Part shown: piece by piece, positions 4,124 through 29,087 of the stretch
Numbering within the stretch: the stretch's first letter is position 1
Layout of the letters: each line of letters starts with the position of its first letter
Assembly: GCA_010909165.1 (NCBI GenBank)
Contig: MU008181.1
Coordinates: 620,001 to 684,000 of the forward strand
From: Anthoceros angustus
Lineage: Eukaryota; Plantae; Anthocerotophyta
Direction: 5' to 3'
DNA length: 64,000 nucleotides
Program-made: the position numbers and the translations under genes
Notes under the pieces: generated by a model
What the model was told of the DNA's origin: nothing
Seen by the model: the letters and a program-made list of their open reading frames with translations, nothing else
Database searches by the model: none

Positions 4124-7119
4124 GATTTTAGTTGTTCCCTTGGTTGCTTTCTCGGCGGAGCAGGCTCCTGTGATCCTTCTCCCTGACTGGATGGATGGCC
4201 CACCTGCCTGGAAGTGAGAGGTGGGCGCCTTTTCCAAGCATGATGGGTGTGGCATCAACCGAATTTGTTCATCTGGATGGCAGCAGCAGGGGCTATTTGT
4301 TTGATTGAGGAAGACGGTGCAAGCAACACCTGTGGCATATCAGGGTACACTGGAGAGCCATTGCCTGGTATGCGGGGGTGTTGCGGGGACCGTGAGGACC
4401 TGCCTGCTAAAACTTCTGGAGCCTTATCTGGGAATTTTATCTGGCAGGTGCTGGCTTCTCCCAGATCGCGAAGTACGGGTGGGAGAATCCCAGTTAGTTT
4501 TTTTGTTAAGCTGGCAAGGCTCCCTGGTTTTCTGCAGACTCTTGTCATGACTAGCTTTTCCTGGGATTCGTTTTAGTACGTAGCTCCTGGTTGTATTTGT
4601 GCACCTATTGTAGGTTGATGTTGTCCGGTGCGTGGGCCAATTGTGGAACAAGGGTAGCCCTGGCCCTCTTGGCGCACTTCCTCCTGTCCATTTTCGCTCC
4701 CACTTTGTCTTGAACCGGGGTCTGTCAAGCATGCTCTGCAATGCTGGGTCCTGCACTCGATGGCTCGTTGTACATCCAGTCAGGTTGACCTCACCTCACA
4801 TACATCCAGCAGAAAGATGACACACTGGAGCTTTTCCCAGGTTCCTTTGTTGCACCCTACATTTGCTACCCCAAGGAGCTTAGCCAAGGGTACGGACATG
4901 GAGGAAGGCGACATTCGGTGCAGAGGCCCCAGCCTGTGGGCATGAGTGACCCTGCCTATGTCCAAAACCAAAACGGTTAAGCAGGTCAACAGACGCTTCA
5001 ACCCTTCCTTCCACCAGTTCGTACCTCATTCGGTTGCCGGAGTCCAAGGCAACGGACTGGAATGATCTGGATGTGGGATGTCTGCAATTGGCTGTCATGT
5101 GCGACAAGGGAGCCACAGTCCAGATGCATGCTGCATTTTCACAAGCTTGGGAGAGAAGTTCCCAGTTGACCCTTGGGCGATGTTTGCCCTTCCCGAGGAC
5201 ATTGCTTGTCCCCTTCTCGGAGGGACTGCAGCTGGCTGGACAGTCATCGGTGGCCGAGCCCTGCGTGCTTCGGGGTTCGCCCACCGATCATCTCTTGCTG
5301 TGACGGGATGTGTGAGTCCATTTCAAAACAGCACCGTTACGCTTTCACTTGCGATAAGGGGGGCAAGCTTCGAGGAAGGTTTGAGCGGGAGTTTGTGTGA
5401 CTGTAGTTGAAAGGCACTGTCAGGCGGGGACCAAGGAACGGCAAATGGTGCTGTACAATGATCTCACACTCTGGCAAATGTACTCGGAACATCCGGTTTG
5501 TTGGGTGGTAGGAGAAGATAAGCTAAGAGTTCGTATCCTTTCACAGAAGACATCATTCGCAGACAGCGCGGCCAGCAACAAGGCAGGCAACCTGGTTTCG
5601 AAGGCACGCATCACGCCATTCTCGTGGTATCATTGTGATCGTGGAGAGGAAATTTGATCCCACCTGCATCTTGTGTGAGTGTAATGCCTGTTGTGCACAT
5701 TTCCGATTGCGGTGATCATAACAAGGTTGGCATGTGACTCCATTTCAAATTTCCCTTGTTTTCGTAACATCCTTCCTGGCCATGGGTATGGAAGTCGCTG
5801 CCAGCGTAACCCACATCAGCTCCGGGTTCGTGCGTCCTCTTTCTCCGCCATTGCCAGCTTTTAGGTTAACAAAACCCGGCCAACTGCTCGATGGCAGGCC
5901 GCAGTTGCTGTGGCCTTTTGTGCCCAGTTGTTAATAACCACGGTCTCAGCGGCCATCCAAACTAGCCTCCCGGCACCACAGAAGGTGAGATATAGGCATG
6001 ACAATGAGCTCGGTTTTGAGCCTCAGCCATTGCAACTACCACAACGTACGGGGTACACTTAAACCACATGGCGGGCTCGGAGAACTGCAAGAAATTTGGA
6101 CCGTTTGAACCAGGCTGCTGGTGAGCACAATCGGACCTTTTTTCAGTCAGGATTCAGGAAGAAATGACCACATCCGATCATGACCTGAGAAATTAACAAC
6201 TTCGTGAACATGGATGTCTGTTGCTTCATGTCCGGCAACTTTTGTTGGAGGGCTGGAGTTCTTTCCGACTCCAGGTCGGGGACTGCAAGACAACATACTG
6301 CACTTGACTGCAACCACTTTTCTGATTCTGAACCAATCTACCATCACAAGACAGCAACATCTTCCAGCAATTGTGCCTCTGCCGACTATACAAAGCTAGC
6401 TGCACAGTGCTCTTCAAACTCTCTCCTGCTTGTGCTTATAAGTTGGTGCAGGTACTGCCATCCTTTTCTTCTCAACGTGTCTGAGATTATTTATGTATCT
6501 GCTCATTGTCTGGAGGTGAGCTCATTATTAATGTGTACATGTTTGATCCATAAATATCCGTAGGGTCTCGTGCTGAAAGCTTTTCCTGCTGGGAGAGAGC
6601 CCTCATGTCACTTGGTCTTCTCCGGAGTAATCACATAGTATTTCTTACAACAAAGTGAGATAGTACTCATATGCCACAACAGATCCATTCATAAACACCG
6701 CACTCATCCATTTGCTCTGTCCCGAAAGTTCAGCTTCCCGGAGTACACCATCCTTTCCCCTCCAACTGGCATTGCAGTATATATCGATGTTGTCCATAGG
6801 TACCACTTCCTCAGGAAGGTGAATCAGTCGAGAAGCGCTTGTCCCTCAGGCCTGAAAACTCATCTGGAGTTTCAAGTGGATATTTAAAGAGAGACATGTA
6901 ATTGACTGAAAATCATGAACTCAAAGAATGTCATGGTTTGCAATGAAGTAACCCAAAAAGAAAGAAGGCTCCCAACAATCCTTTGTGTGACGCATTTCCC
7001 ATGGACCGGTCGGGCAAACAAGGCAAGTCACCAGCAGGGGAGTGACCGATCAAGCTCAGATTTACTTGCTCCGTTATTCCCGGTTCTCTTATAGAAATCC
7101 ACCCTTACCCCCAATTGGT

Positions 7120-7439
7120 TCGTGGGTGGCTTATCTTTTTCTTTTCATAGACACTCTAAAAGATAGTTGCCTGGGTAGCCTATTCTTTGTCATATGTCCA
7201 TACCTAATGGAGCCCGATACAAGCTCTTTGTTGTATGATCCCAATGAGTTCCGTGGAGCGTAATACAAGCTCTTTATATGATCCCAATGCGTTCCCTGCC
7301 AAAGAAACCGGGATATTAGCTCTTTGTTGTATGATCCATAATGCCCCTAATGTAAATTGTTTTGTATTCCTTAATTTCTGGCTTTTAGTATTATTTATAT
7401 AATTATTGTAATATTTATTTTCAGTAACACCCCCTCTCT
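7120..7439 (-). mobile_element. 3' LTR remnant with PPT of a minus-strand LTR element
   Basis: Minus strand AGAGAGGGGG (7439-7430) directly followed by TGTTA (7429); AT-rich LTR-like tract with three AGCTCTTT(GTTG)TATGATCC copies. The distal end is approximate. Partly duplicated at ~10697-10835. Confidence 0.45.
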
Positions 7440-7914
7440 AGTGAGGTGGAGCAGACACGCAGTTAGAAGCAACAACACCACAAGACATCAGCACTAAGCC
7501 TCCAAGTAGCATACCATCCTTCCACCAGATGACCCGTAGTGAGCCCTTACTTGAAAGTCAACAATAATACATGAGAGATCATGGAGAGCTCCTCATCTTT
7601 GCCTAAGCTGGGTACATGGCTCTCTTAGCTGTCTTCCCTTGATCTTCTCCTCACAGTTCTCCTCTAGACACAGACACACTCTAGGCTCGCATTTCGGTGG
7701 AGGGAGTTTCTGCGACGGAATTGGCGACGAGCAGAAGACATGGTGACCCTTTAGGGGGTGCGCTTTTTGCTATGCCGCTCTTCAGAGCCCTGTATTTAAC
7801 TGCCTCCTCGATATGGGAATGCCTGTACCCATCAATGGCTGACAATACCCATATCCTGCTGGGGACAAGGCTAAGGAGGCTTTCGGTTTCTTCTCCTCGA
7901 AGCTCTCTCGGCTT

Positions 7915-8140
7915 GGCTTGAAGGTTAGGATCTGAAGGTACAGGGTTTTGTCTCTATCGAGTGTTTCGCCCTCTCTTCAATACCCGGAGGGGGATATTGC
8001 TTTTCCGCGGGGTCTTTCTTTTCTTGGCTTGGCTTGAAAGTCAAGATCTTAAAGTACAGGGTCTTGTCTCTATCGGGTGTTTCGCCCTCTCTTCAATAGC
8101 CGGAGGGGGACATTGCTTTTCAGCAGGAGCTTCCTTTTCT
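7915..8140. repeat. ~125-bp internal tandem duplication (also copied at ~11315-11520)
   Basis: GTCTCTATCG(A/G)GTGTTTCGCCCTCTCTTCAATA(C/G)CCGGAGGGGGA(T/C)ATTGCTTTTC occurs twice. Confidence 0.85.
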
Positions 8141-8230
8141 TGACGTCCCGATGGGGCCCCTGACTTTCATTCAAGAATTCGTGGATGCGGCTTAAACGAA
8201 GGATTTGGCACATTTAAAGGACCTTTCTCA

Positions 8231-9514
8231 GCTAAGGGACCCGCAGGTGGCGTTTGGGAAGCTAGGGGACCCGCAGGTGGCGTTTGGGAAGCTAAGGGAC
8301 CTGTAGGTGGCGTTTGGGAAGCTAGGGGACTCGTAGGTGGCGTTTGGGAAGCTAGGGAACCCGCAGGTCGCGTTTGGGCAGCTAGGAGAGCCGCATGTGG
8401 CGTTTAAGAAGCTACGGGACCCACAGGTGGCGTTTGGGAAGCTACGGGACCCGCGGGTGGCGTTTGGGAAGCTACGGGACCCACAGGTGGCGTTTGGGAA
8501 GCTCTGGGACCCGGTGGCGTTTGGGAAGCTCACAGGACCCGGTGGCGTTTGGGAAGCTACGGGACCCTTGGTGGCGTTTTGGAAGCTACAGGACCCGCGG
8601 TGGCGTTTGGGAAGCTAGGGACCCGCGGTGGCGTTTGGGAAGCTAAGGGACTGTAGGTGGCGTTTGGGAAGCTAGGAACCCGGTCGCGTTTGGGCTAGGA
8701 GAGCCGCATGTGGCGATTAAACTACAGGACCCGTAGGTGGCATTTGGGAAGCTCGGACCCACAGGTGGCGTTGGGAAGCTACGGGACCCAGTGGCGTTTG
8801 GGAAGCTACGGGACCCGCGGTGGCGTTTGGGAAGCTACGGGACCCGGTGGCGTTGAAGCTACGGGACCCGCAGTGGCGTTTGGGAAGCTCTGGGACCCGG
8901 TGGCGTTTGGGAAGCTGGGACCCTTGGTGGCGTTGGGAAGCTAGGGACCCGCAGTGGCGTTTGGGAAGCTAGGAGACTCACGGTGGCATTTGGGAAGCTA
9001 GCGGACTGCAGTCGCATTTGGGAAGCTAGGAGGCTGCATGTGGCGTTTGGGAAGCTAGGGACCCGCAGTGGCGTTTGGGAAGCTCGGGACCCGCAGGTCA
9101 CGTTAAGAAGCTAGGGACCCGGTCGTGCATTTGGGAAGCTGGACCCGCATGTAGCGTTTGGGAAGCTAGGGACCCGCAGGTGGCGTTTGGGAAGCTAAGG
9201 AACCCGGTGGCATTTGGGAAGCCAGAGAGGCTGCATGTGGCGTTTGGGAAGCTACGGACCCGCAGTGGCGCTTGGGAAGCTACAGAGGCTGGGTCACGTT
9301 TAGGAAGCTAGGGACCCGCTGGTGCATTTGGGAAGCTACGGACCCGCATGTAGCGTTTGGGAAGCTAGGGACCCGCAGTGGCGTTTGGGAAGCTAGGGAC
9401 CCGTAGGTGGCGTTTAGGAAGCTAGGGGACCCGCCGGTCGCATTTGGGAACCTACGGGACCCGCATGTAGCGTTTGGGAAGCTAGGGGACTCGAAGATGG
9501 CGTTTGGGAAGCTA
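8231..9514. repeat. 30-bp satellite array 1 (~43 units)
   Basis: Consensus GCTAGGGGACCCGCAGGTGGCGTTTGGGAA; head-to-tail with no spacers. Confidence 0.97.
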
Positions 9515-11611
9515 TCGTGGACTTGATTTTCGTGCTACCTCTTCTCATGTGAAGGCCTATGCTGCCACAGCCTTGAATCCCATAAAACCGCAGTCTTATG
9601 AGGAAGCTCTCAACAGGCCTGATCACAAAGAATGGGAAAAGGCAATCCAATCAGAATATGATTCTCTAATTGAGAATGGAACTTGGGAACTTGCAAAGTT
9701 GCCCAAAGGCATAAAATTGGTATCATGTAAATGGGTGTTTAAGCTAAAGGTTAAGGCTGATGGATCATTTGACAGATATAAGGCCAGACTAGTTCCTAGG
9801 GGATTCACACAAGTTCCAGGTTTAGATTACCTTGAAACCTTTGCTCTGTCCCGAAAGTTCAGCTTCCCGGAGTACACCATCCTTTCCCTCCAACTGGCAT
9901 TGCAGTATATATCGATGTTGTCCATAGGTACCACTTCCTCAGGAAGGTGAATCAGTCGAGAAGCGCTTGTCCCTCAGGCCTGAAAACTCATCTGGAGTTT
10001 CAAGTGGATATTTAAAGAGAGACATGTAATTGACTGAAAATCATGAACTCAAAGAATGTCATGGTTTGCAATGAAGTAACCCAAAAAGAAAGAAGGCTCC
10101 CAACAATCCTTTGTGTGACGCATTTCCCATGGACCGGTCGGGCAAACAAGGCAAGTCACCAGCAGGGGAGTGACCGATCAAGCTCAGATTTACTTGCTGG
10201 TTATTCCGGTTCTCTTATAGAAATCCACCCTTGTCCGATAGATCCCATTTTGAAACAACGGTTTCCGCCGGTTCCTAATGCGTGTGGTAAACTATCGCCG
10301 GCTGGCGGCGATAGTTGAACCTAAAGCAATGCTCCAAACTAGAGGAAAGAAAATTAAAATTCCGCCACTTCAAGAAGGTTTTACGCAAACTATGGGAGTG
10401 GCCAACCTTCTTCATACCTCTATCCGACCACAAAACTTATCGTTTAATACCGTCGGACCACATACGGGCGTCTACACTGGATCATTAGGAGGGCTCATCT
10501 GCGCTGCACATCACATCACGAGTCTAAGACAACGGCGAGGTTTCTAATGCGCTCATCTTCTGCGTCTTCAAATTCGTTTTCTTCCAAGGCCTTCTCGTCT
10601 TCACATCACCCTTGGGGTCGTCATGTCTTGCCATACATCATCCAACGTTTGCTGCCCATCTTCCAAAAGTTCACTGTTGTCGCCTGCGTCGGCACTCAAA
10701 GAAACCGGGATATTAGCTCTTTGTTGTATGATCCATAATGCCCCTAATGTAAATTGTTTTGTATTCCTTAATTTCTGGCTTTTAGTATTATTTATATAAT
10801 TATTGTAATATTTATTTTCAGTAACACCCCCTCTCTAGTGAGGTGGAGCAGACACGCAGTTAGAAGCAACAACACCACAAGACATCAGCACTAAGCCTCC
10901 AAGTAGCATACCATCCTTCCACCAGATGACCCGTAGTGAGCCCTTACTTCAGCAAAAGTCAACAATAATACATGAGAGATCATGGAGAGCTCCTCATCTT
11001 TGCCTAAGCTGGGTACATGGCTCTCTTAGCTGTCTTCCCTTGATCTTCTCCTCACAGTTCTCCTCTAGACACAGACACACTCTAGGCTCGCATTTCGGTG
11101 GAGTTTGCTGACGGAATTGGCGACGAGCAGAAGACATGGTGACCCTTTAGGGGGTGCGCTTTTTGCTATGCGCTCTTGAGCCACATGTTTGCGCCTCCTC
11201 GATATGGGAATGCCTGTACCCATCAATGGCTGACAATACCCATATCCTGCTGGGGACAAGGCTAAGGAGGCTTTCGGTTTCTTCTCCTCGAAGCTCTCTC
11301 GGCTTGGCGAAGGTTAGGATCTGAAGGTACAGGTTTTGTCTCTATCGAGTGTTTCGCCCTCTCTTCAATACCCGGAGGGGGATATTGCTTTTCCGCGGGG
11401 TCTTTCTTTTCTTGGCTTGGCGAAAGTCAAGATCTTAAAATCTGGTCTTGTCTCTATCGGTGTTTGCCTCTCTTCAATAGCCGGAGGGGGACATTGCTTT
11501 TCAGCAGGAGCTTCCTTTTCTTGACGTCCCGATGGGGCCCCTGACTTTCATTCAAGAATTCGTGGATGCGGCTTAAACGAAGGATTTGGCACATTTAAAG
11601 GACCTTTCTCA
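9515..11611 (+). repeat. Mosaic duplication: Copia RT piece / unique piece / Sola left-end piece / LTR-element piece
   Basis: 9515-9846 = 12935-13265; 9840-10232 = 6711-7106; 10224-10705 = 13869-14375; 10697-11611 = 7300-8230. Junction microhomologies TTTGCTC, TCCACCCTT and CAAAGAAAC. Confidence 0.9.
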
Positions 11612-12934
11612 GCTAAGGGACCCGCAGGTGGCGTTTGGGAAGCTAGGGGACCCGCAGGTGGCGTTTGGGAAGCTAAGGGACCTGTAGGTGGCGTTTGGGA
11701 AGCTAGGGGACTCGTAGGTGGCGTTTGGGAAGCTAGGAACCCGGTCGCGTTTGGGCTAGGAGGCCGCATGTGGCGTTTAAACTACAGGACCCACGGTGGC
11801 GTTTGGGAAGCTACGGGACCCGGTGGCGTTTGGGAAGCTACGGGACCCAGGTGGCGTTTGGGAAGCTCACAGGACCCGGTGGCGTTTGGGAAGCTCACAG
11901 GACCCGGTGGCGTTTGGGAAGCTACGGGACCCTTGGTGGCGTTTTGGAAGCTACGGACCCGCGGTGGCGTTTGGGAAGCTAGGGGACCCGCAGGTGGCGT
12001 TTGGGAAGCTAAGGGACCTGTAGGTGGCGTTTGGGAAGCTAGGGAACCCGCAGGTCGCGTTTGGGCAGCTAGGAGAGCCGCATGTGGCGATTAAGAAGCT
12101 ACGGGACCCGTAGGTGGCATTTGGGAAGCTACGGGACCCACAGGTGGCGTTTGGGAAGCTACGGGACCCGCAGGTGGCGTTTGGGAAGCTACGGGACCCG
12201 CAGGTGGCGTTTGGGAAGCTACAGGACCCAGCGGTGGCGTTGAAGCTACGGGACCCGGTGGCGTTTGGGAAGCTACGGGACCCTTGGTGGCGTTTGGGAA
12301 GCTACGGGACCCGCGGTGGCGTTTGGGAAGCTAGGGGACCCGCAGGTGGCGTTTGGGAAGCTAGGAGACTCACAGGTGGCATTTGGGAAGCTAGCGGACC
12401 TGCAGGTCGCATTTAGGAAGCTAGGAGAGCTGCATGTGGCGTTTGGGAAGCTAGGGGACCCGCAGGTGGCGTTTGGGAAGCTACGGGACCCGCAGGTCAC
12501 GTTTAAGAAGCTAGGGGACCCGCCGGTCGCATTTGGGAAGCTACGGGACCCGCATGTAGCGTTTGGGAAGCTAGGGGACCCGCAGGTGGCGTTTGGGAAG
12601 CTAAGGAACCCGCAGGTGGCATTTGGGAAGCTAGGAGAGCTGCATGTGGCGTTTGGGAAGCTAGGGGACCCGCAGGTGGCGTTTTGGGAAGCTACGGGAA
12701 CTGCAGGTCACGTTTAGGAAGCTAGGGGACCCGCTGGTCGCATTTGGGAAGCTACGGGACTCGCATGTAGCATTTGGGAAGCTAGGGGACCCGCAGGTGG
12801 CGTTTGGGAAGCTACGGGACCCGTAGGTGGCGTTTAGGAAGCTAGGGGACCCGCCGGTCGCATTTGGGAACCTACGGGACCCGCATGTAGCGTTTGGGAA
12901 GCTAGGGGACTCGAAGATGGCGTTTGGGAAGCTA
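11612..12934. repeat. 30-bp satellite array 2 (~45 units)
   Basis: Same unit as array 1; abuts Copia RT sequence at 12935. Confidence 0.97.
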
Positions 12935-13752
12935 TCGTGGACTTGATTTTCGTGCTACCTCTTCTCATGTGAAGGCCTATCTTTTGACCTTGAATCCCAT
13001 AAAACCGCAGTCTTATGAGGAAGCTCTCAACAGGCCTGATCACAAAGAATGGGAAAAGGCAATCCAATCAGAATATGATTCTCTAATTGAGAATGGAACT
13101 TGGGAACTTGCAAAGTTGCCCAAAGGCATAAAATTGGTATCATGTAAATGGGTGTTTAAGCTAAAGGTTAAGGCTGATGGATCATTTGACAGATATAAGG
13201 CCAGACTAGTTCCTAGGGGATTCACACAAGTTCCAGGTTTAGATTACCTTGAAACCTTTGCTCCTGTCGTCAAGCTTGCTACTCTGCGTACTATGTGTGC
13301 AATTGCAGCTGACAAGGACTACGAGCTTAGAATGTTTGATGTGAAGACTGCCTTCTTGCATGGAATTCTTGATACTGAAATTTACATGCAACAGCCGCCT
13401 GGTTATGAGGTCAAAGGCAAAGACGACTATGCTTGCAAACTAATTAAGTGTCTATATGGACTTAAGCAGTCAGCCATGAAATGGAACGCTACACTGGACA
13501 AGGAACTGCAAGCCCTAGGTTTTACAAAGAGCAAAGCCGACAGCAGCCTGTACATATACATCAAAGGTGATGTGATCTGTTACTTAGCTGTCTATGTTGA
13601 TGACCTTATACTGGCCAGCAACAGCCTGGATTTCATCTCTTTGATCACGAACCTGCTAGCATAGAAGTTCCAGATGTCAGATCTTGGTCCACTTCAAAGC
13701 TGTCTTGGTATTCACATTCAGCGAAATCGTGAGAAGAGAGTGCTTACCTTAA
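12935..13752 (+). pseudogene. Copia reverse transcriptase, N-terminal part
   Basis: EYDSLIENGTWEL..KWVFKLK..YKARLVPRG..DYLETFAPV..DVKTAFLHG..LYGLKQS..YVDDLIL; premature TAG at 13662-13664. Confidence 0.95.
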
Positions 13753-14379
13753 ACACCATATATCTTCAAGAGGGGGAATATACAAACCCTCTTCAGTTGC
13801 TGGTGGACCCTCTTGACAAACATCGCACCTTTCGGGAAACTATGATTTTTTCACGTTGGTGACGTATGTCCACCCTTGTCCGATAGATCCCATTTTCGAA
13901 ACAACGGTTTCACGCGGATCCATGTGTGCGTGTGGTAAACTATCGCCGGCTGGCCGGCGATAGTTGGACCCTCGTGAAAGCAATGCTCCAAACTAGAGGA
14001 AAGAAAATTAAAATTCCGCCACTTCAAGAAGGTTTTACACCAAACTATGGGAGTGGCCAACCTTCAATTGTATACCTCTATCCAGGCCACAAAACTTATC
14101 GTTTAATCTGGTGGACCACATACGGGCGTCTACTGGATCATTAGGAGGGCTCATCTGCGACTCGTCGCACATCATCCGCAGTCTAAGACAACAGTGGTTT
14201 CTAATGCGCTCATCTTCCGTCTTCAAATTCGTCGTTTTCTTCCAAGGCCTTCTCGTCTTCGTTCACATCACCCTTGGGGTCGTCAAGCGGAGGCGGTGCC
14301 ATACATCATCCAACGTTTGCTGCCCATCTTCCAAAAGTTCACTGTTGTAAATGCACGCAAATCACTCAAAGAAACAACT

Positions 14380-15200
14380 TGTGCCTTGGACTATCTTTTG
14401 ATACATACCTCCTTTGCCCGTGTGATGGTCCTCGGCGATGCGGTTGAAATGTAAGCTCTTCCTGCATCCGGAAGCACCTCATAACCATGTATTCGGAGGA
14501 ATGTACCTGCACATCTCAAATCTGCCTCAAGCGCAATGCGATTCGTCCACTCAGATGCGGCAAGTGTGGTGGTCCATCGAACATGCATCAAGAACCCGGT
14601 CCCTTCCTTTGAGAAGGTCCTTATCGATTTCATAAGAAGACCCGGTGGGCGTTGATAAGGGCATACCACAAGTTTGTCATTGGGCGGTACACTGTTTCTT
14701 CACCACGATGGCGTGTCCTATGAGCCTCCCATTGTTGAACGTCCGTGCATAGCATTGACATAGGAGCTCTATCCTTTGTGCTTGTGTCTTTCGGACACCA
14801 TCCCCGATGATACTCCACAGTCTCAAACCCGCCTCTGTCATTATGCATGTTGGTCTTATCCCATATGAAGGATACCAATCCGCCTTTCCATCCATGTCGC
14901 ATGGATTCCACGTGTGGGCTTCTTGACCCCATGCATCACTATAATGCGGAATTCTTCACTTGTTGTCTTTTCCAAAGCTCAAACATCATGTCACCCGCTA
15001 TCCATAGGGCCAATGTCAAACCCTCGTGGAGCGTCCATTACCGAGCGTGTACCCCTCGTCCTCGAAACCCCGCATGTCAAGAATATTTCTTGCCTCCACA
15101 GTATTGAACACTGTTTGTCAACGGAAGGCACGGTAAAATGTTAAGACCTTCTTCCGGTCCTTATCAAAGCCCTTTGCTCGTTTTCAAGTCCTTTCCAGTT
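14380..15200 (-). pseudogene. Beta-class N4-cytosine/N6-adenine DNA methyltransferase-like domain inside the transposon (frameshifted)
   Basis: Beta-order motifs: VMDAPRG (motif IV-like, 15035-15021), FIWDKTN..VEY (14869-14849), CPYQRPPGLLMKSIRTFSKEG (from 14663), DRVLDAC (14601-14581), TTTLAA..NRIALEAD. Matches the N6_N4_Mtase pattern HPTQKP..LL..LI...S..GD.VLDPF.GSGTT..AA...GR..IG.E.D. Needs 2-4 small indel corrections. Confidence 0.75.
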
Positions 15201-15309
15201 GTTGACTTCAAATATGAAATGGCGGAAGTCATCCGGCTCGCCAAAACCTCAACGTCCTTTAGTTGCTGCAAATTAAAACAAAACCACATCGTCGGTGCTG
15301 GTATGCGAA

Positions 15310-15610
15310 AGGCGCCCTCCATCACCGGGCTTCACAGGTGGGCGCCGGCGCCCTCCATCGGCGGGCTTCACAGTGGAGGCGCGGCCGCGCCATCCACGGC
15401 GAGCTTCACGGGTGGGCGCCCGGCCCGCCGCGCCCTCCATCACCGGGCTTCACATGTGGGCGCGGCCGCCGGCACCCTCCATCACCGGGCTTCACAGGTG
15501 GAGGCGCCCGGCCCGCCGCCCTCCATCGGCCGGGCTTCACATGTGGGCGCGGCCCGCCGCGCCCTCCACATGCGGCTCCGGTGGGCGCGGCCGCGGCGCC
15601 CTCCACGCCC
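15310..15610. repeat. GC-rich ~36-45 bp tandem repeat (~8 units) inside the transposon
   Basis: GCCCTCCATCACCGGGCTTCACA(G/T)GTGGGCGC repeated; minus strand gives Pro/Ala/Gly-rich (P/H)VKP(G/A)..EG peptides. Confidence 0.85.
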
Positions 15611-15619
15611 TCCACACCC

Positions 15620-18600
15620 AACTCCCAGAACTATTGAATAGAAAGTGTTTCTCACCTTTCCGGCAAATCTTTTTGAAAACTGCCACACTATCTTGCATGA
15701 TGGGGATACTCTTTCCGCACCTCCTCGAGCGATGAGCACCCAAGGTGTTTCGCCATCGCCACTTGGATGATGTGAAATTTCTTGGGAGGTGATATCATCA
15801 TCCATGCCCTTTAGGTCAATAAGCCGCAAGAACCTTCTCCGTTCTTGATATTAGTATCATTGCCGCATTCACGATGGTATTCCTTGAAACGATTTCCAAG
15901 GCTTTGCAAGCATATCCTTGACTTCACATATGCGACATCGATTTTCTTTGACTCTTGATGACCTTCCGCTTCCTTTGCCTTTCTTGCTCGTGCCCCGACA
16001 TGTTTCTTTTGCTCAAGCTCCCGGCTTCCCACTTTGTAAAAATCTTATCCACATTCTCCCATACTCGCCTCACCTGCAATACACAAAATATGAGTCCTGT
16101 TGTCCACTTTGTTGCTTATATACTCTTCGCCCCTCATCGTCGTCAATCAACCCTAGCGGTTTATGCAGTTAAACTTCCATGCCATGGTCATCTCAGACCC
16201 GTTTCGCGATAATCGTCCCTCAAATATCGACTTGCTCAATGAAATTCATTTTCTTCCTCCGTCGGACAACACATTGTGATCTGTTGCAGAATTCGCATTT
16301 CACCTTCCCACAATACATGGGCCTCCACGTCTTGGCGAGTCTTCCGGGACATATATCGCGGTGCTTCACGCATAGGTGTGGTTGCCTCCAAGAACCCCAT
16401 GACGTATTTTTTGCCACGAACTTGTCCCAATCAAGTTTGCTCGGTCTTCACTCTGGGGTCAATCATACATAATAGAGGCAATCGCCTTCCTCAATCCACG
16501 CCCTTGAAATCACGCGTGCCAAGTAATTTGTCCATGCTTCGTCAACCCTCCGTGTCGAGCATCGGTGTGAGGTGTGATCTGGCGAAGGTTCTCCAACTTC
16601 ACCAAATGTCTCCAAAACAACCTTTTTGAATAGGCCGATTCCCTAATGCGCGTTAGGGGTCTTCATCCGAATAGCATCGCTAACCGCTCCTTGTCCGTTG
16701 ATACATGGACGGAAGGTATGTCCTCCAACTCCTGCGCCTTTTGCATACTATTGGTTTTTTCTCCTGGTCCACTAGCCAGCTCCAAGCTCTCGAATGACTC
16801 CTCTACTTTGATGCATGGCCCTCACCTTCCTTTTCCTTTCTTGCTCTTATTCCACTCACATCCATGGAGGGAAGGAGAGGCGGCCGGCGGCGCCCCTCTT
16901 CAGGATCACCATGATCTGCTGTTGCCCAGGCAGTGCTTCCGGGAATGCCGGGCGCCGGCCGGCCTCTGAGCGCACAAACCAATCCGGATCGGGGTCACCA
17001 AAGTTGCCTCTTCCCCTGCAGGCGGGTGGCCCCTTCCCTCCCTCGGCTCATACCTAACAGGGCAGCCCTAAGGTCTCCACGGCGGATCTCGAACCTGCTG
17101 CGCATCCGATTGATCATCATCAGCGAGAATATCGGAATAGGGCCATCGTCTTCATCTTCGGTCCAAGCTCGCTTCCTTCTTCACAATCATCCAGATGAGA
17201 TGTTCCTCCTCAACCAGCCTTGTAGTGCGCCTTAGGGACATGACTCTTACATGCTGAACAACCGATTGTGTGATTTACGCATAGGGCCTGATGTATGCAT
17301 TTCCAATTTGAGGCCCTGATTGACACAACATTTGTGGTTAGAGACCAAGCGACCGAAAAAACATACGAGGTCTCACTACCCCAAAATGCCTTGAACAATT
17401 ACGTTTGTTCTCGTCTACATTCGCGAAAGATCACGACCTGGGGCTCGCATTTCTTGATGATCAGGTTGTTGAACTTGAGATCAAATGCCCTGTATAGCTC
17501 GGGCCCTTGTGGCACTTCATCAAACTCCACGTGGCTTTGTTATACTGAGGCTTGCGCGATGGGTCTCCTTGACACATATCCGGTTCGCCCACACAACCCA
17601 ACCCTCGCTCGGCGATTAGGCAAGGCATCCTTGTATCCCATGATCCACAACTTGAAGAGTGGTGTCCGAAAATACCTTCATCCTGGCTCCGATTCTTGAA
17701 CCAACATCCAGTCCTTATCCAAAAGAGGTGTGGAATCCATCGGGCTCCAAGCCTTCGTATGTAGACAGTCTCCTCAAAGGCATGAGGGGATGGAATAGGC
17801 CCTGCATGCTTTGTCTCCCTTGTCACCAGTAGGAAGACCTTTGGTTGTGCTAGCCTTACCGGAAGTAAGGCTCCGGTTCGCGATTCGCAGCTCCTACCAA
17901 TTGCGACCCAATCAAGGGACTTCCGCCATCTTGGTCCCGACCCTCCGCGCCTTGAGGTGCATCCATGGCGCCCTTGAGGTGCATCCATGGCGCCCTTGGC
18001 GGATGCCTTCCCTTCCGCGCTTTTGATCTCCTCACCTTACTGAAGTCGGTGGATCGATTCTATCGCCTGGTCCTTCTTGCTCCTGCGACCCATTGCCATC
18101 TGGAAGGCCACCCAAACCAATGAGACCGCAATTCTTGCTCGAGAGGTGGAAGATGGAAGAGCAAAACCCGTAATCGACCTTGGATTAGAGGATGTTGGCA
18201 AGGAGGGCGTGGCGGCGCGATGGCGTGCAATTGCTCCGGCTTCGCGGTGCGGCAGATAGTCTGGCTGCGGATGCGGCGGAAACGCTCCGACCTTCACTGG
18301 CTCGTGGGGCGAATGGGCGCACTCTTGTGAAGTGTTCCCTTCGAGAGGTGTCTCGATGCACACCTCGACTTACAAACACGATTTGCTCCAGTAAAAGAGA
18401 TAATCCTGTTTCTTCCCTAGGCAATAATAACCCCATCGACATTAGGGTTGAAAGGATGCTCAAACATCATGTCCAGCGTATCCACATGAAGGTACCAGCA
18501 AAACCTAACCACTCGGAAAACTCGTATGTATGGATGGAGCGGGTAGAACTATTTTTCATTCGCAAGTTCCACCAAACCAAAGTAGGAGTACCCACAAGTA

Positions 18601-18800
18601 TCACCATCATGGTAATCAAAATCCCCATTGCGCCACAATCATTCCATGTGGGATGCCGAGCATAAATGCAATGTAGTTAAAGCTGCCGCCATTCCTTGTC
18701 CCTAATAAGCATATCTAAGCGATACGCTATTAACGTCCATTTGTCCCGAATGATTGACCCAAGTTTGCCTTAACCTTGCACTCGGCCGCAAGGGTTTCGA
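15620..18800 (-). pseudogene. Uncharacterised transposon accessory ORF(s) upstream of the methyltransferase domain
   Basis: Protein-like fragments across frameshifts (WTNYLARVISRAWIE; VAKNTSWGSW..PHLC.KHRDICPGRL; MLAKPWKSFQGIPS; FYPLHPYIRVFRVVRFCWYLHVDTLDMMFEHPFNP); no family recognised. Confidence 0.45.
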
Positions 18801-19369
18801 GTTCGGCCCGACACTTGAGGTCGTCTGCTGACCACCCTTCACAAACATGTTGAATGCTACTCATCCTTTGGATGGAGATGAGGTATTGTTGTTCTCAATT
18901 TGCGAGTTTTGGGCTTCTTTGAATGACGGACTCTATTCCATCCGTCGGGTGCATCGCCTCCGGTGTTGTCTTGCGAAGCGGTGTGCAATTAGACAGACGC
19001 AAGGAGGGCGTTGCACAAAGGAGGAGGATACTAAGCGTGCCTCAAATACGTCTCGGCATGTGGTGTGTGGACCTCACCTTCCCAAAAGGACAACGCATTC
19101 CAAGGTATAACGGAGAGAATCGAACCGGTGCATTCCTACTTGCTTGAATTCCGTTCCTCACATACCAATCTTGTGGCTTGCATTTGCAGCTCGTTCGATG
19201 GTGGCCACAATGGGCGCCGTTCATCTTCACCATCATTAGGGGGTGTGCCTCGGACAGAAACCTCAATTTGTATGCCGCCTTAGATAGGAGCCCGTCGCTC
19301 GCATGAGAATGCACAAAGTAGTGGACACTGCTGCCCAGTGGGAGGGCCTCAAGCATTGAGGCGACTTAT

Positions 19370-22295
19370 TTCCTACTATGGATGAGTGGGAAAGGTATCC
19401 TCCGGAAGCGGTCGGTGACTTCGAGGAGGATGGCGTCTTTCAAACACCAGGTGGACATGCCCAATCATACCATCCCAAGCCATTGGTAAGCTTGATAGCA
19501 ACAAAGGCTCTTGTTTCAAAAAAAACTGGTGTGCGATGAAATGCGGCGGCTGCGTCTCTTGATTTCCAAGCCTGTTGCAACCAAATGTGTGTTAAATTGA
19601 CTATAGAAAGGTTGCGGGAGCGAGATACGGTTTCTACGAATGGGCGAGGCAGGAGGCGAGACATTTCGAATCTCTTGTTCACGTCGATCGCGATGGCGGC
19701 AATGATAAAGTTGTGACTCATCTATGGGGTCGGTCGAATGCGATCTTGCCTCGAGCCTTCGCAGGTATATTGCATTGGCCATAGTAGGTATGAGGAGGCT
19801 GAAGAAGGGTTATTGCACATGCACCGTGGATGGCTTTAGAGCAAACCCTAAACAGTCTACATATGCGAGTGCAATCAGCGTGGATGGACAGCGCATTCTG
19901 TTCATGGCGGAAAGGCTCCCCAATGTTGATGTGTTCAATCTTCCGACACATTTACAAAGTTCAAATTTGGGCAAAATATAAGCGGCAATGTGAGGGTTCC
20001 ATCAGCGGTTTGTCACCTATGCTTGGTTTTGAAACTTTGGAGGAGAACTTTAGCGGTGAAGATTCCAAAGTCCAACAGTTCTCCACGTGCTCGCTTCGCA
20101 GGATTAAAAGCGACAATTAGAAACACATCGCTAAAGTCGACCAAGGTATTCTCCGAATCCTTTCGGTGAGTACATTATGTGTCCTTCTATGTCCTTTGTT
20201 ACGGCTGCACACTCTCCATGTCAGGTGGTTAGTACATCGTGTTCTCTGTAATTTGAGTGTGGCATGTTGAAAGGGACGTGCTCATTGAAGTAGGCTACCA
20301 TGTCGAGTTCGACCAATGAGTGGGCGGCTGGCCGCCACTCCTCTTTAGCACCTCTCGGGGTTTACGCGCTTGTGCATTCTATGGAAGAGGCGTCCCGGTG
20401 TAGGGAAGAGGAGGAAGTGTCTTGGCCAACCTAGGAAGCTTTGGGTGGGAAGGTAAAGGTGTGTCGGGAAGGTTAGGGTAGTAAGAAGGAACGTTTTCCA
20501 TGCTCCTCATGGCATTGCACTCCATAGTAAGAGGTATGGCCGGCAATGAACATCTGGCTTCCGTCGAGGCCTCCGGATAGAGGCGGCCGGCAGCGCCCTC
20601 ATCTCCCACCAAGATGCATTCTAATGGTAGGCGGTTTGCGGTGTTAGTGGATAGCCAGCGGAGTGGTATGAGGATGACGCGCGGCCGCGCTTTCCTAAAA
20701 GTCCACTTTTGATTCCCTTGTATCGCTCTACGGTTTTGGTGGCGACAAGCATTCGGCCTAAGGGTTGACGCACGATTCTCATGTTGCGGATACGGGTGCC
20801 ATACCGGATCTTGGGTGTTCCATGATCCGCAATGATCCTATATGCGCAATGCTGTGAATGTCTAGCTGTAACACCAATTGTTTGCGAGAAAAATATCAGC
20901 AGCCTTAGATGCCCATCGAGATCGGCTGCACCGGCGAAGATGACAAAGCATCGCGCAAAACTACGTGGAGCCCCACAAATATATGTTATTGGCCATCGAT
21001 GGAATGGACCGGAAGAAACCGCATTTCTTGCGGTGGTAGAATTTGGATGAAGAATGTCGTATTTCGATTGCGTTGTGGGGTGCATGATTCACAATTACAC
21101 TCACAAAGCAAGGGCATATTTGCATTATGCCAACCTCCAATGACGCCTAATTTGACTATAAACATCATTCAAGATGTTATCCACAATTATGATGGGGTCT
21201 GCCTAAAGTGTTGTACTTGGACAACACTTGGGAGAACAAGAACCAACTACTCTTTGCGTATCTCAACATGTTGGTAGACATGGGAACATTTGAGAAAGTG
21301 AAGGTGGGCTTCCGCTAGTTGGGCACACCCATGATCAAATTGATCGGATGTTTTCATGCTTCTCTAAAAGCTTGAAACACAAGGAAGCGCACACTCGCAT
21401 TGGCAACTATTATCGAGGCGTACACTCCAAGGCCGGAGGTGAAGATCTTCAAGTTCCCGACTTAGTATGTATGGCCAATAAGACGGGGATGGGCGGCGGG
21501 CGTATTCGGTGAGTAAATTGAATAATCTATCGTTCCAGCATCAATTCAAGATCACACGCGAGGAGAAACCGGAGCGGTCGGTGTATGTCGAGTAAGCGAT
21601 CTCAACATCGCTGTTGTGGGAAACAGAAGGAGGCTTGGAGTTTTTGAAGTTTGTGCCACGGAGGTCATAAGCTGCTCCTTTAGCCTTGGCTAGAGATAAA
21701 AAGCGCGGCCGCTTGTCTCACGCAGAGGCGTTGCTTACTTGAAGCGAGGTTATAGCTCCGGCCTTACGTTACGCGGAAGAGTACACATGGTGGGAGGAGT
21801 TGGGTTGACCAGAAGAAATTGTAATTGTGGACAACCATATCGGGTTGGTTCCGCGACCATGGAAGTGGTTTTCGAGAGTGGAGGTGGCAGAGTGCCCTTA
21901 TGCATGCCCGTCGGCTTTCTTGGGCAGCTCTGTTGCGCGAACTTCCACAACGCGATATGTATTTGGGGGCATATAGAAATTTGGGCAAGCAACAAGAAGA
22001 TATGACACGTTTGAATGGCGATATTGCGGAGATCAATAAAAGAATGTTCATAGCAGTTCCGTGTTCCACAGACACTCACAACAGGCCATTTTGGATTGGA
22101 AAGGTCATAGAACTGAAGTTGGAGTCGCCCAAACCTCACTTCCTCGTTCATTGGTATATGACCGAGCATACGGATGCATATGAGGGAAGATATGTTGAGG
22201 AATATATAATTAGGAAGCGGTACGAACATGGCTTCAAGGTAGGGAAGAAAGGAAGCAAATCCTTGTATACCAAAAATATTCAACGGTCTTTGTGA
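19370..22295 (+). pseudogene. Sola/DUF7869-type DDD transposase (frameshifted, probable intron from ~20166)
   Basis: LKLWRR...VKIPKSN (~20030), YMLLAIDGMD (~20985), LPKVLYL-DNTWENKNQLLFAYLNMLVDMGTFEKVKVGF-LVGHTHDQIDRMFS (21200-21360), C-terminal FIAV..PFWIGKV..VHWY. Confidence 0.88.
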
Positions 22296-23330
22296 CGAAC
22301 GGTAATCCTTTATTATGGATTCGTCTTGAATGCTCGAAAACATTTATATGTTGTTGACAAGAAAGCGATAAAGGATAAGTTGAATGAATTGCGTGGTTTA
22401 TTCAGATCCAAAGTACCCACGAGGATAGTGATGACCATGGTGCGAGACGGTCCGGCGGCGATGATGAGTGACCTCCGGAGATGAGTAAACGTGCTTCCAT
22501 GGAGAAGGAATTGGGAGAGGAGGCAATGGTTCCCGCATGCTGAGATAAATATAGGGTTCTAGCTTCACCCGGTCTAAATTCCACTGTACTCCTTGTCCAG
22601 AGCCTTTGTTAGGGTAAGCCAGCGCGTGAATCATGTTTGGCTTTTGGTCCATTACCACCTCAATGCAATACAATACCGTGTATCCGTATATGTGGTTTGC
22701 AACACACAATAAATTAAGTATGTGTTTGGGCCGGTTATGCTGTGCCCCAAGATTATAGTGGCGTGTTGTCCATAGCTGGACAAATTTGTCGAGGATGATA
22801 GATAGGAGCGTTGTTGCAGTCATCCCAACCATCTTCGATCCGTAGGTGGTGTTTGTTCTTCAATTTGTAATGGAGGAACCGAATCGGTAGTGACCTCCAT
22901 AGACAAGGCAGGCGCGGCCGACGCGCCTGCTCCACAGGCCGCCAAGCATACGGTCTTTGACCCTGGCATGACCTCTACCCTTTGCCAAACCCTTGACATC
23001 AAAAGCAATTTGCGAAGACTATGGGTTTTGCATGCCAACGTACTTTCTTCCGTGTGGACCCAAATCTAGGTTCAGCATCCTTTCCCGGCATTAACGGCCC
23101 GGTGGGTCTTAATTTGCCTTCATCATATGGGTAAAGGATTTGAGCACCCTTCACGGCGTGTACCCATATTGTAAAGGGGACAACGTGTATGGGACACCTG
23201 TTTTGTGGTTCTTTCACCAAAACATGCTATTAAATCGTTTGAGACCCATGTGTAACCCCCTTTGGCGCATATTTTCAAGAAAACCCCCATCATGTAAATT
23301 CCCCCTCTTGAAGGTTTATGGTGTTCTTAA

Positions 23331-24160
23331 CTCAACCTAGATACTTGCTGGAAAGTGCAGAGTAGCTAGTACTCAAAGATGCAAAGCCTGCTGCCACACC
23401 ACTCCCAAGTGGGTTAAAGTTAAGCAAAGACATGTCACCAGTCACACAATCTGAAAAAGATGATATGAGAAATGTACCTTATAGACAGGGCGTAGGCAAA
23501 CTCATTTATGTTGCCAATACAACACGTCCTGATGTAGCTTACTCAACCAGTGCACTGTCGCAGTACCTTGAGAATCCAGGACAGGCCCACTGGACATGCG
23601 TTAAAAGGGTTTTTAGATACCTCAAAGGCACATCATACAGAGGCATAGTTTATGCACACAAGGATGGTGTGACTCTTGACCTTGAGGTATACACTGACTC
23701 CGATTATGCTGGCGACATCAACACAAGGAGGTCAATTTCAGGCTACATAGTCAACTATGCAGGTGGCCCTATTTGTTGGTCAAGCAAAAAGCATTGCTGC
23801 ACTTTCAAGCACAGGCCGTCAGGTACTGGCGGCGACCAAGGAGGTAATTTGGCTGAAGTTGCTGTTCTCCGAGCTTGGTGTTGATCTTCCAGCCTGTATC
23901 ACAATAAGGACAGATAATCAAGGATCAAAGTCTTTAGCTGAGAACCCAGTCTTTCATTTGAGAACTAAACACGTCGCTGTGGAACATCACTTGATTCGTG
24001 AGCTACTGGCAGAGGGCACAATTGCCTTGGAGTACATTCCAACACAAGAGAACCTAGCAGATATCTTAACTAAAGCTCTGGGAAAAGAGCTGCATGAATG
24101 ACATGTAAAAAGTCTTGGCCTAGGAGACTCCTCAGAGTTCTTAGGAACTGCAGCAGCAAA
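23331..24160 (+). pseudogene. Copia RT C-terminus and RNase H
   Basis: PYRQGVGKLIYVANTTRPDVAY..HWTCVKRVFRYLKGT..YTDSDYAGD..RRSISGY..DNQGSKSLAENPVFHLRTKHV..LADILTKAL. Confidence 0.95.
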
Positions 24161-24699: not shown

Positions 24700-27600
24700 T
24701 GTGGCGGGACTTTTGCTGATGGCCAGCCGGGCGCGCACAATCCCGTGTCGTTGTAGGAAGAAGTCCGTTCCCAAGGGAATGATAGGCCCGTTTACCGCGT
24801 TTCAGGTGATTCTTACCGTCCAGCGCTCGTTCGGTCCCAACTCACACACATACTCCTAACTACTCTAGCGTTCACCGTCTGAGGCCGGTATGGCCAAGCG
24901 TTTAAGGACCCGTTCGCGTCCGTATCGTTCACATACATCCTTCACGCATCCGGTCCTTTCCTCTCTCCTCTCACGCTACACTCTTGATCTTAGAAAAACA
25001 GATTCTGTGATCGGACCTCCTCGTCGTTCGGGCCTCTCGTCCGGGCTCTACCTCCGGAGTTCCTCCGGCTCACGCGTTCGATCCAGTTCGGTGTCGGACC
25101 GCGGCTCGGGGCGACACGGATCACCGGTCACCCTTCCACACACACACGCGTTAAGTCGTCACGGGACCTTGATCAATCTCCCGGGCTGCACCTTTCGGTG
25201 ACTCGGACTCACGTTAGCAAGAAGACTCACAAAGGTGCGCAGCAGCATCAACACCAAGAAAGATGCTTTACTAGGCGCCTCGGCCCTCTTATCTGCGCCC
25301 AAGGTGGCGTCTTTATTACACCCCTATTACGGCGATAGCCTTTCGGTATACCTAATCGGCCGCCTACCATTCCCCTATCTCCTTCGCCCAGGGGGTGGAA
25401 GGTCCACAGGCCCCTCGGAATGGGTGGTCAATCCCCGTCAGCGGTTGTGGTGCACCCAATCGGATGATCCGTGAGGCGGGCCTCCTCTCCCGGAATCACA
25501 GCCGGGTTGGGCTCGTGATCGACAACGCGTTACGGCGTCATCCTCCCTGGCCTCCACAGGTCCTTGGCGGTGGGGCCACCGGCTCGGCTCCCCTAAGCGT
25601 AAGTCGAAGGGGCTCCTCCTTCTTGCCGGCCCTCGAGGTCTGTCTCGACTCCGAACTTGAGTCCGGCTTACTGGTCCGGCCGGCTAGGTCCGACCTTGTC
25701 TGGGTCCGGACCTCGGGGTCCGGACTTATTAGGGGTCCGGACTTGAGGTCCGGACTTATTGAGTCCGGACTTGAGGTCCGGCCTCCCTCTGAGTCCGGAC
25801 AAAGTCGGACTCACGCCCACCGGGTTTCCTCCCTCACGGGACTCCTCGTGGCTCTCCTCAAGTCCTCCATGTTCCCGATCGCCCGTGACTCGCCGTTGGC
25901 CCCTCCTTCCATGGTGAGGTGCGGGTGCTTACCTCGCATCCGCTCCTCGTTACGCTCCTCGGTTGCTCCTCTCCGCGCTCCGTCATCTCAAGCAGGGGCC
26001 ACTAGGGTCCTGTCTTGTCCCGTGGCCTTCATCTCCTTGAGCCTTCCGGTCCGTCAGTGCGGCCGTCGAGGCTTCTCGCCTTGGGAGCTCGGCGTGGTAA
26101 TAGGCAAAGTCAGATCGACTTGTTGAATTGCCTCTTCCACGTGTGCGGGCACCGATACTCCCTCGCCATAAGTGTTAGGGGGCGTCTTTGCCGGCTTGTT
26201 GGCCACCTCTCTGCCCGGTTGTGGTGGGGCCGGGGCATCGCGAGGCTACAAGGCGGCCTCGGTCACCTCCTGCTGCTGCATTGCTCACCTCCGGCTCCGT
26301 CGTTTCCTTTCCGCCATGGCTTACCGCCATAGCGCGGCGTTCCCTTCCGCCTTTCTCGGTGGACCGGCTTCTTTTACGCTTCCGGTGCTCGCGCTCCCGT
26401 TCATTACGGCCTTTAGCTCGCGGCTCCTCTCAGTGATCGGATACCTCCGTCCGACTCGGACTTCCTCCTCATACATGGCACAGCAGCGTCCAACTCCTTG
26501 GATAGTCGCGATTTTCCTCCGTCTTGAGGCGGGGCCGGGCTACTGTTTCGTGCTCGAGTCGTGGATTCTCGTTGAGAATCACTGCGCTCGACGCATCTTG
26601 GGTTGTAGCTCCAGTGTCCCTTTGTCCTCCATCTGCTTCCTCCTCTGCGGTGTACTCGGAGATCCCCTATCTCCCAGTCTTGGCCCTTCCTCCTCCATAG
26701 CCTTTGTCACGGCCTTGAGTTAGCCTCGGTCTGTGACTCTCTCCACGGTTCGATCACGTCAGAGTGATCCGGTCGCTCTTCACTTGACAGGCTCGCCGCC
26801 TTTACAGGCCTCGCCCACTGCTCTGGCCGCCGCCTCCGTCCCGAGCTCTCTCTTGTGCCGGGCCTCTTCCGCCTCTGCGCTTCCCTCTTCGCTGCAAGGT
26901 CCTCCGCCCGCGCTTGGGCCTCTGAGCTTGCTTGTGACCTGTGAAGAACCTTGGCAGTCTGTGAACCGGGCCTCGCGCTCCACACCGGCGTTTCCCTTCC
27001 TCGATCCGGCGAGGGACTCCGCCTTTCCTTTGCCTCGGCCGCCTTCACTTGCTCTTGGGTTCCACCATCCTCCTCGGGTGGCCTCCACTTCACAGGTCTT
27101 CTCCATTGCACGAGACCCCAAAGCATTCCGTCCATGGCGGTAGCAGACTTCGCCGTGTTTCTTCCACGGCCGCGGTGAGGCCCCACAAAGTCCGTAGTGG
27201 GGCCGGCATTTCTCGATCCGAGGACCTCCATGCATGATCGAGTAAGTCGGAGGTTCTCCGGACCTAATCGGGACCCTCGGGTCACAGTGGTGAGTCGAGT
27301 CTCACCCTCTTGGCCCTCTTGGCCTCTAACTCCTTTGTGCCCTCTTTCTCACAGGGCTCGGAGGAGGTGAGGGGTCGGAGCAAGCTCTTTTGCCCCTTCA
27401 CAGCCGGGGCAGGGGCCGGCTCGAGGTGGGGCTGCGCGACCTCCTGCTCCTTGGGCCACGTCCCTTTGCCCCTCCTTACGCCTCTTGACCTCTTGCCACT
27501 CAGGTGGCGGGGGTAGAATCGGCACCTACGAGTCTTGCGTTGGTGGTGCCGTCTTCCGCCTCTTGGCTCCCTTGAGTTCGTCGGGGCTCGGCCGTCGTGG

Positions 27601-29087
27601 TTGTTGTTGTTGCCGGTCGGGCCGCCTCCGGCATCGGCTCCCTCCTGTCTTGTGCTCGGAGGGCACCAAAGGAGGAAGGGGAATCGCCTCCCAAACTTCC
27701 ACAGGTGGTGAGGGGTTCGCTCAGACGTATGGAGTCAGGAATCCTCGATCGTCCTCCTCCGAGTCGCTTGGTCTTGAAGGGCGACCCCCACCTCAGGCGC
27801 CCTTGCACGCTCTACTTGGCGGGGCCTCCGGCCCCCCGGGCGCCCGCTCAAGCTCTCCTCCTTAGGGGCTCGAAATGTCCCCATACATGAATCGTATTGA
27901 CCCCGATGGCGAGGCTTCGCTCCTTAGCTTGCGTGCCTCTGGCCCGGGCAGGCGAAGATAATCCTTCCCGATCCGCTCTCTTCCCATTGGGCGCATGCGA
28001 GAATACCAGCAGGTTATCACCAAGGTGATCCACCTTGGTGGCGAGTTCAATGGACAATGATCCGGGCTACCGCCCTTACTCGTATCCGGCGGATCGGATA
28101 TCAACCATCCGTTGGTTGTCATTGCGTTCGAGCCTCAACGCCGCGGCGTGGCCCTATCTTCCCCTTCGCCTTAAGGGGCTCGGCACCACGCCCCTTCTTC
28201 CTCCTTGGTTGTAGGCCATCCTCGGGACCTCAAGGTCCATCGCCTCGGGTCCTCCGGAGGTTCTTGGATCGGACCTCCTTGTTGATCGCCGCATCTTCGG
28301 GCAAACTCCGGACTAGGTAACGTTGTCAAAGGTCGAGACCATTTGGAACACGTCCGGATGCCACTCTGCACCAATTCCCCACACTTCCTCCGGCCGGGGC
28401 CAGTCCGGATAGCGCGGGTCACAATGTTGCGCTCCACGGTCCATGGCTCCCGGTCTCGGCTTTTGGGTGCCATTGCTTTCTCCTCCTCTTGTTCTTTGGC
28501 TGGCCGGAGTCCGGCACGATGTTCCTCCTTCGCGCGTTGTTGCTCCAACCCAGCGGTGCGCGCTCTAAGGCGCCCAAAAGATGGCCGAGCGGATTGCGGG
28601 CGCAAGGGGAGGATGGAGGGCTGCGGCAATGACCTCCTCCTTGGCGCTTGTGGAAGTAACGCTGGCGGAAGGCGCCTCTTCGTTGTCCGTGGCGCGAGTG
28701 CATGGCTTACTCGACCCTCGCTTCACTCGGCCTTACGCGCGCCCGGGCGTGAATACCTGCTCGGCAAGGTTACGGTCTGACCTCATGCCCGACCTCCACT
28801 CGGGGCCGTCCACGTGGCGCCGCCTCGTCATCCTCACGCCTCCGCTCCTAGGTTACTTTCACTGGCGTACTTATCCTATTTTGACACAGGTGGGTTCGGA
28901 CTTATCCGTTACTCGGCGTAGTCGGAGCTTGCCATAGTGGTCGGGGTCCGTTGTTCACTCCAGTCGGAGTATACTCGAGCCTCGTCCGGCGCTACCCCAA
29001 TTTATTCCTCCTTTTCCGCCTTATTTATCCTTCAATCCTAAAAAGCGAAACCCTACTTATTTCTTAACTCCCGAGTGCATAGCCACA
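24700..29087 (-). repeat. 3' LTR of the Gypsy element (4388 bp)
   Basis: Starts TGTGGCGGGAC and ends GCATAGCCACA; collinear with 34642-40121. Confidence 0.9.
25690..25810. repeat. Short GTCCGGAC(TT) tandem repeat inside the LTR (also ~35600-35730 and ~36770-36850)
   Basis: About 8 copies of TCCGGAC at 13-15 bp spacing. Confidence 0.8.

Follow-up and report, generated by a model that had tools for sequence, protein, structure and literature searches.

We identified a 9.6-kb DNA transposon with terminal inverted repeats at positions 13753–23326 of the 64,000-nt stretch of DNA analysed here (the window), inside the RT reading frame of a Copia element. The interrupted RT was recognised as RVT_2 on 12924–13664 (E = 1.7e-53), and the Copia frame (...RVLTL/TQPRYLL...) is restored once 13753–23326 and one copy of a 4-bp duplication are taken out, with TQPRYLL resuming at 23331. 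The inverted ends, at 13753–13779 (+ strand) and 23298–23324 (− strand), are 27 nt long (27–28 nt) and match with two mismatches; 100 shuffles gave no match. The preliminary description of this locus had reported a TTAA-flanked element. A real cut-and-paste transposon is present, and the TTAA label is in doubt: the target-site duplication parses either as TTAA (13749–13752 and 23327–23330) or as CTTA (13748–13751 and 23326–23329). We prefer CTTA as the better fit, because the ends are then fully symmetric (AACACC...GGTGTT), whereas with TTAA the right end is asymmetric by 2 nt. The Sola superfamily of DDD transposons is characterised by inverted ends and a target-site duplication of 4 bp, and the present element, a candidate Sola-type transposon, shares both.

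A tandem duplication of ~3.1–3.4 kb (6711–9850 versus 9840–13268) takes in the beginning of the Copia RT frame, and its two units agree at 94.5% over 7300–9850 and 10697–13268 and at 99% over 6711–7106 and 9840–10232. In the second unit, blastn identified an additional 480 bp (10224–10705) as an 85–88% copy of a subterminal segment of the transposon (13869–14375, just 3' of the methyltransferase-like ORF described below), without any inverted end. The duplicated region also holds a tandem array of 30-nt units at 11611–12934 (45 copies, 83% matches), several frames of which translate to repeats such as GGVWEATGP, and, 3.4 kb upstream at 8230–9522, a second array built from the same unit.

Within the transposon, a transposase relic (VGHTHDQIDRMFS) at 21294–21509 on the + strand matched DUF7869 (PF25273) above the Pfam cut-off (E = 2.2e-8; 34.4 bits against 26), and this match is partial, covering profile positions 99–125, that is 27 of 192. 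The element is thus established as a cut-and-paste transposon with a transposase relic, and DUF7869 is its sole transposase signal, as none of its other ORFs (~30 scanned) matched a Pfam family. The same scan gave no DDE_Tnp_1_7 match, and piggyBac, the other TTAA-inserting superfamily, was rejected. Word-indexed protein searches returned no relatives of the DUF7869 piece or of a 156-aa ORF, no other copies of the element were obtained from metagenome contigs, and no mention of DUF7869 was found in the literature searched.

On the strand opposite to the transposase relic, the preliminary description had joined a chain of peptides in 14380–15200 (−) into a beta-class amino-methyltransferase (MTase) domain. 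All of its peptide strings were found on the minus strand, at 15131–14391. They are spread over three frames, and connecting them takes a minimum of three frame changes (a mere 30 nt separates two of these) as well as reading through two stops (G*HDV*). The supposed motif IV lies in a stop-free piece at 14991–15131 (−), which holds VMDAPRG and ends in VMDAPRGFDIGPMDSG; past the two stops the same frame runs on with EEFRIIVMHGVKKPTRGIHATWM. A 100-aa ORF at 14630–14932 (−) holds SFIWDKTNMHNDRGG..VEY and GLVSFIWDKTNMHNDRGGFETVEYHRGW, with a motif VIII-like FIWDKTN...RGG...VEY..GW. It is followed by a 92-aa ORF at 14391–14669 (−) with VCPYQRPPGLLMKSIRTFSKEG and, further along in the one frame, TTTLAASEWTNRIALEADLRC; its CPYQRP..LL..I..SKEG ... 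TTTLAA ... NRIALEAD resembles motifs X, (I) and II of beta-class amino-MTases. The motif I lead-in of the preliminary description, GRDRVLDAC, belongs to an alternative frame that overlaps the 92-aa ORF (14551–14664, −) and needs two frame changes: the motif I region reads FLMHVRWTTT in frame and VLDACSM/TTT after those changes, and neither G-x-G nor an FxGxG SAM loop was found there. Taken together, the remnant has the spacing D-x-P-x-G, ~64 aa, IWxK, ~68 aa, PxQRP, 17 aa, VLD/TT..AA and R..I.LE.D. Just upstream of the remnant, and still inside the transposon, lies a G+C-rich tandem array of 42-nt units (15312–15609, 7.4 copies).

We compared the stretch with two custom profiles, a beta-MTase HMM made from E. 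coli YhdJ and 26 diverse IMG/VR relatives, and a ParB-MTase profile made from the Wolbachia phage WO methylase (confirmed ParB_N + N6_N4_Mtase) and its relatives. The explanation that has to be weighed most seriously against MTase ancestry is chance resemblance, which we put somewhat below an even chance: the remnant would be an unrelated, uncharacterised transposon ORF or non-coding DNA, and its motifs would have come from selecting the most favourable frames out of 128 kb of six-frame translation. Several results sit well with it. In an unfiltered hmmsearch of 1973 stop-free pieces with the beta-MTase HMM, the 92-aa ORF ranked just 11th with 1.3 bits. A purpose-written frameshift-tolerant profile alignment gave the region 19 bits under ordinary penalties, which is noise. 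Lenient penalties recovered the colinear alignment of the preliminary description unguided (IWDK..., PYQRPPGLLMKSIRTFSKEG, VLD, TT..AA, R..IALEAD) at 33.3 bits, against maxima of 29.6 bits in 14 shuffled windows and 28.1 bits in six reversed decoys. We withdrew this score as significant against shuffles, as the same settings, which favour the region, gave 40.6 bits to a false alignment at 29774–30228, at a decayed Ty3/Gypsy integrase relic (29568–30092, −; CDACRIGK..., GIDFVGP, DRGTHF) that Pfam misses at E ≤ 1. This false alignment is a useful warning against reading motifs by eye. The ParB-MTase profile gave the region 26.7 bits, with decoys reaching up to 32, and the hhalign P-values of all 851 pieces 45 aa or longer were distributed as expected by chance. 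Both diagnostic motifs, moreover, are missing in two copies of the sequence, and a ParB signal is absent directly upstream.

Other results argue against chance. The motifs are colinear at four or five positions, spaced much as in the family, and an accessory gene would be expected at this place in the element. When conserved columns only were scored, the region became the top match of the window at 22.8 bits (reached by two of 40 shuffles; Gumbel p = 0.034), a rank lost with other settings. With hhalign and the ParB-MTase profile, the 92-aa ORF aligned in one frame over motifs X-I-II (P = 0.0083 at columns 326–372, and P = 0.007–0.008 for the 50-column alignment; 4th of the 851 pieces), and the IWxK of the 100-aa ORF fell at the expected profile columns (P = 0.15). 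A read-through with X at each break scored 1–2 bits and was beaten by 18–26 of 1000 residue shuffles with the YhdJ-type profile and by 4–7 with the ParB-MTase profile. These three partly independent tests give empirical p values of 0.004–0.034 (0.004–0.03 when rounded), all before allowing for the choice of stretch and frames in the preliminary description and for eight parameter settings. The order IV-VIII, TRD, X, I, II that had been claimed was thus recovered objectively; its significance, and with it the resemblance beyond chance, is marginal.

Library searches all speak on the side of chance. The preliminary description had staked its assignment on a PF01555 search, which at E ≤ 10 gave no match to N6_N4_Mtase or to any other SAM-MTase, either for the pieces or for the frame-corrected composites (71 and 80 aa as typed for the search; the gathering score of PF01555 is 26.7 bits). 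At the same threshold, six pieces, the frame-corrected composite of the C-terminal half and a mosaic of the N-terminal half were all without any Pfam match. NCBIfam and PHROGs gave nothing relevant for pieces or composites, and phmmer against the PDB gave nothing. An exhaustive HMMER search of the 100-aa ORF against 1.84e9 representative proteins returned 12 weak matches, none of them an MTase. All seven of these that were scanned with Pfam were FG-GAP repeats, and we rejected an FG-GAP affinity of the ORF: the repeated VYRPSTGxWY sums to a false score. Recognition in the ESM Atlas was low for the flagged ORFs (1970 and 2047, a range typical of shuffled sequences) and pointed to no family, and the AF2 model of the 100-aa ORF was unusable (pLDDT 51.5, pTM 0.19). 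An MT-A70 reading of the pattern W-x-K-T-N...G-G...E was likewise rejected, as it had no Pfam match and the spacer of 50–70 aa before PxQRP fits N6_N4 better. Negative library results on decayed genes are weak evidence, because an integrase relic as obvious as the Gypsy one in this window also escapes Pfam.

Because motif order and spacing fit a beta-class enzyme, descent from an MTase gene would be the most likely single origin of the remnant. Homology of the ORF remnant to MTases is possible but unproven, and we rate an MTase origin at close to an even chance.

The ancestor, if an MTase gene, may have been of the phage ParB-MTase type. A preset test addressed the segment directly upstream of the remnant (15131–16800). 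The best match to the ParB profile was not there, and 15690–16820 was without signal. The doubtful ParB_N-like candidate that did emerge is a 154-aa ORF at 20621–21085 (−) with DGHLRL and AYRIIAD (hhalign P = 0.0036, rank 2 of 851), the score of which lies within the range of decoys. It had no Pfam or PDB match, an Atlas recognition of 1088 and an AF2 pLDDT of 35. This ORF may be antisense noise to the transposase, given its overlap with a + strand ORF immediately upstream of the DUF7869 match.

Contigs from a low-coverage DNA run of the same organism (X1, 98 Mb) cover much of the element at 80–99% likeness and leave uncovered the 42-nt array and 14484–14607, a span that includes the G-run deletion proposed in the preliminary description at ~14601. 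The flagged stretch is multi-copy. A 300-nt X1 contig with a word depth of 43 spans 14838–15099 (−), where over 262 nt it has 21 inserted bases and one substitution relative to the window; it is without both stops, and its rebuilt translation reads ...VMDVPRGFDIGPMDKRVDMAMMRQCLSFEEKTTSEEFRIIVMHGVKKPT.... The stretch was once coding, because this contig lacks the stops. If the indel states of X1 are adopted, minus the contig's own +1 at 14911, a single frame of 173 codons opens from 15131 to 14630; this mosaic is hypothetical. Another X1 contig has a 1-nt deletion within the CPYQRP codons, at 14644. Distinct copies appear to carry distinct lesions, the pattern expected of a decayed gene, and the data support the flagged stretch as the remnant of a second ORF, in opposite orientation to the transposase, that is open in another copy of the family.

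These copies also bear on whether the gene is largely intact, with the breaks in the window being assembly indel errors, and codes for an MTase-like protein that has diverged and may be catalytically silent. The near absence of substitutions among the differences to the 300-nt contig, the loss of both stops in it and many further indels across the element would fit such errors. The explanation is nonetheless very unlikely: the lesions at 14911 and 14644 belong to the X1 contigs themselves, a word depth of 43 in a 98-Mb run marks repeat-family sequence and not this locus, the stretch was absent from all RNA runs checked, and motif IV still reads DVPRG.

The preliminary description had cautioned that motif IV lacks the catalytic aromatic residue, and this was borne out: the window reads DAPRG and the X1 contig DVPRG, so the abundant copy, as judged from its translation, is also without motif IV, and no [DNS]PP[YFW] tetrad was found in frame near DAPRG. 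An isolated DPPW tetrad follows SDILADDD in a short stop-bounded piece at 17077–17088 (−), ~2 kb upstream of the remnant on the same strand; its surroundings lend it no support, and chance is the probable explanation. When real MTase genes were degraded in silico with 10%, 20% and 30% substitutions, they still scored ~175, 88 and 39 bits, compared with 33 for the remnant. With just two differing positions in the 27-nt inverted ends, and with D-V-P-R-G in the abundant contig as well, DPPY and FxGxG cannot have been lost through decay after the insertion; the loss is not recent. If the ancestor was an enzyme gene, the master copy of the subfamily would already have been without the catalytic and SAM-binding motifs.

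That the window copy is an active N4C/N6A MTase marking the element or its targets, as the motif resemblance had led the preliminary description to propose for self-recognition or against silencing, is exceedingly improbable and already contradicted by the two in-frame stops, at least three frame breaks, the missing [DNS]PP[YFW] tetrad and FxGxG loop (APPA for SPPY kills the activity of N4CMT; PMC8885841) and the absence of transcript evidence in the RNA runs checked. As read from its sequence, the probability that this copy functions is near zero.

We therefore favour, at even confidence for the explanation as a whole, a pseudogenised, MTase-derived accessory gene of a DUF7869-type transposon. 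A DUF7869-type element of 9.6 kb with terminal inverted repeats inserted into the Copia RT and carried, besides its transposase, what we read as an accessory (non-transposase) gene on the opposite strand, the remnant of which ends ~640 nt inside the left inverted end. The most likely single ancestor of this gene would be a beta-class, phage ParB-MTase-like N6A/N4C DNA MTase gene, and its catalytic [DNS]PP[YFW] and FxGxG SAM loop would have been lost already in the master copy of the subfamily. The window copy makes no enzyme and is simply carried along by the element.

Among known systems, the phage and bacterial fusions of ParB_N and N6_N4_Mtase (PF02195 + PF01555), such as the 'DNA methylase' of Wolbachia phage WO (MN180250.1, 5433–6662), provided the best-fitting profile tried. 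The IWxK, HPxxKP-like, VLD/TT..AA and R..I.E.D positions are alike in order and spacing in these fusions and in the remnant. Unlike them, the remnant has no significant profile match, reads DAPRG or DVPRG in place of DPPY, is missing FxGxG and is broken, and the only ParB candidate is doubtful and 6 kb away. Giant DNA transposons of red algae, Plavaka and also Mutator, carry the accessory genes PAG2 (PF01555 DNA methylase + SET) and PAG3 (ParB-like + 2OG oxygenase) (bioRxiv 10.1101/2025.02.11.637652). Plavaka resembles the present element in being a cut-and-paste transposon that combines its transposase with a beta amino-MTase family gene as an accessory and with a ParB-like domain, both domains being only candidates here. 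The differences are a DUF7869 transposase here versus a Plavaka DDE transposase there, another host lineage, and a PF01555 domain that InterPro detects in the red algae and not here. N4CMT of bdelloids (PMC8885841) and MpDN4MT1a/b of Marchantia (bioRxiv 10.1101/2021.02.12.428880) are beta-class N4C enzymes of bacterial origin, encoded by intact, expressed host genes and with 4mC activity; their catalytic tetrad is SPPY or TSPPY, and changing SPPY to APPA abolishes the activity of N4CMT. They share with the remnant the proposed permuted family, in which the catalytic half precedes the SAM-binding half, whereas the remnant is broken, transposon-borne and without the catalytic tetrad.

A further step would be that land plants harbour a DUF7869/Sola-like transposon family whose intact members encode a phage-type, ParB-fused beta-class N4C/N6A MTase, with the window holding a decayed member; we consider this tentative and well short of an even chance. 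Were it true, such a family would be a vehicle for amino-MTases into plant genomes, might mark DNA with 4mC or 6mA, and would link the transposon-borne enzymes of red algae with the N4C host genes of rotifers and Marchantia. The window alone cannot establish an MTase-carrying family, its copy being dead and its identity resting on marginal statistics. It does fix the ends of the element, its layout (a DUF7869 relic opposite an accessory ORF) and the finding that the catalytic motifs are already missing in an abundant subfamily.

Downstream of the transposon, the window contains two pairs of direct repeats with 87% identity, ~11 kb apart, of ~4 kb (25191–29084 versus 36257–40120) and ~1.7 kb (24700–26355 versus 34642–36262). 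Long LTRs, or a single retroelement present twice, could account for them.
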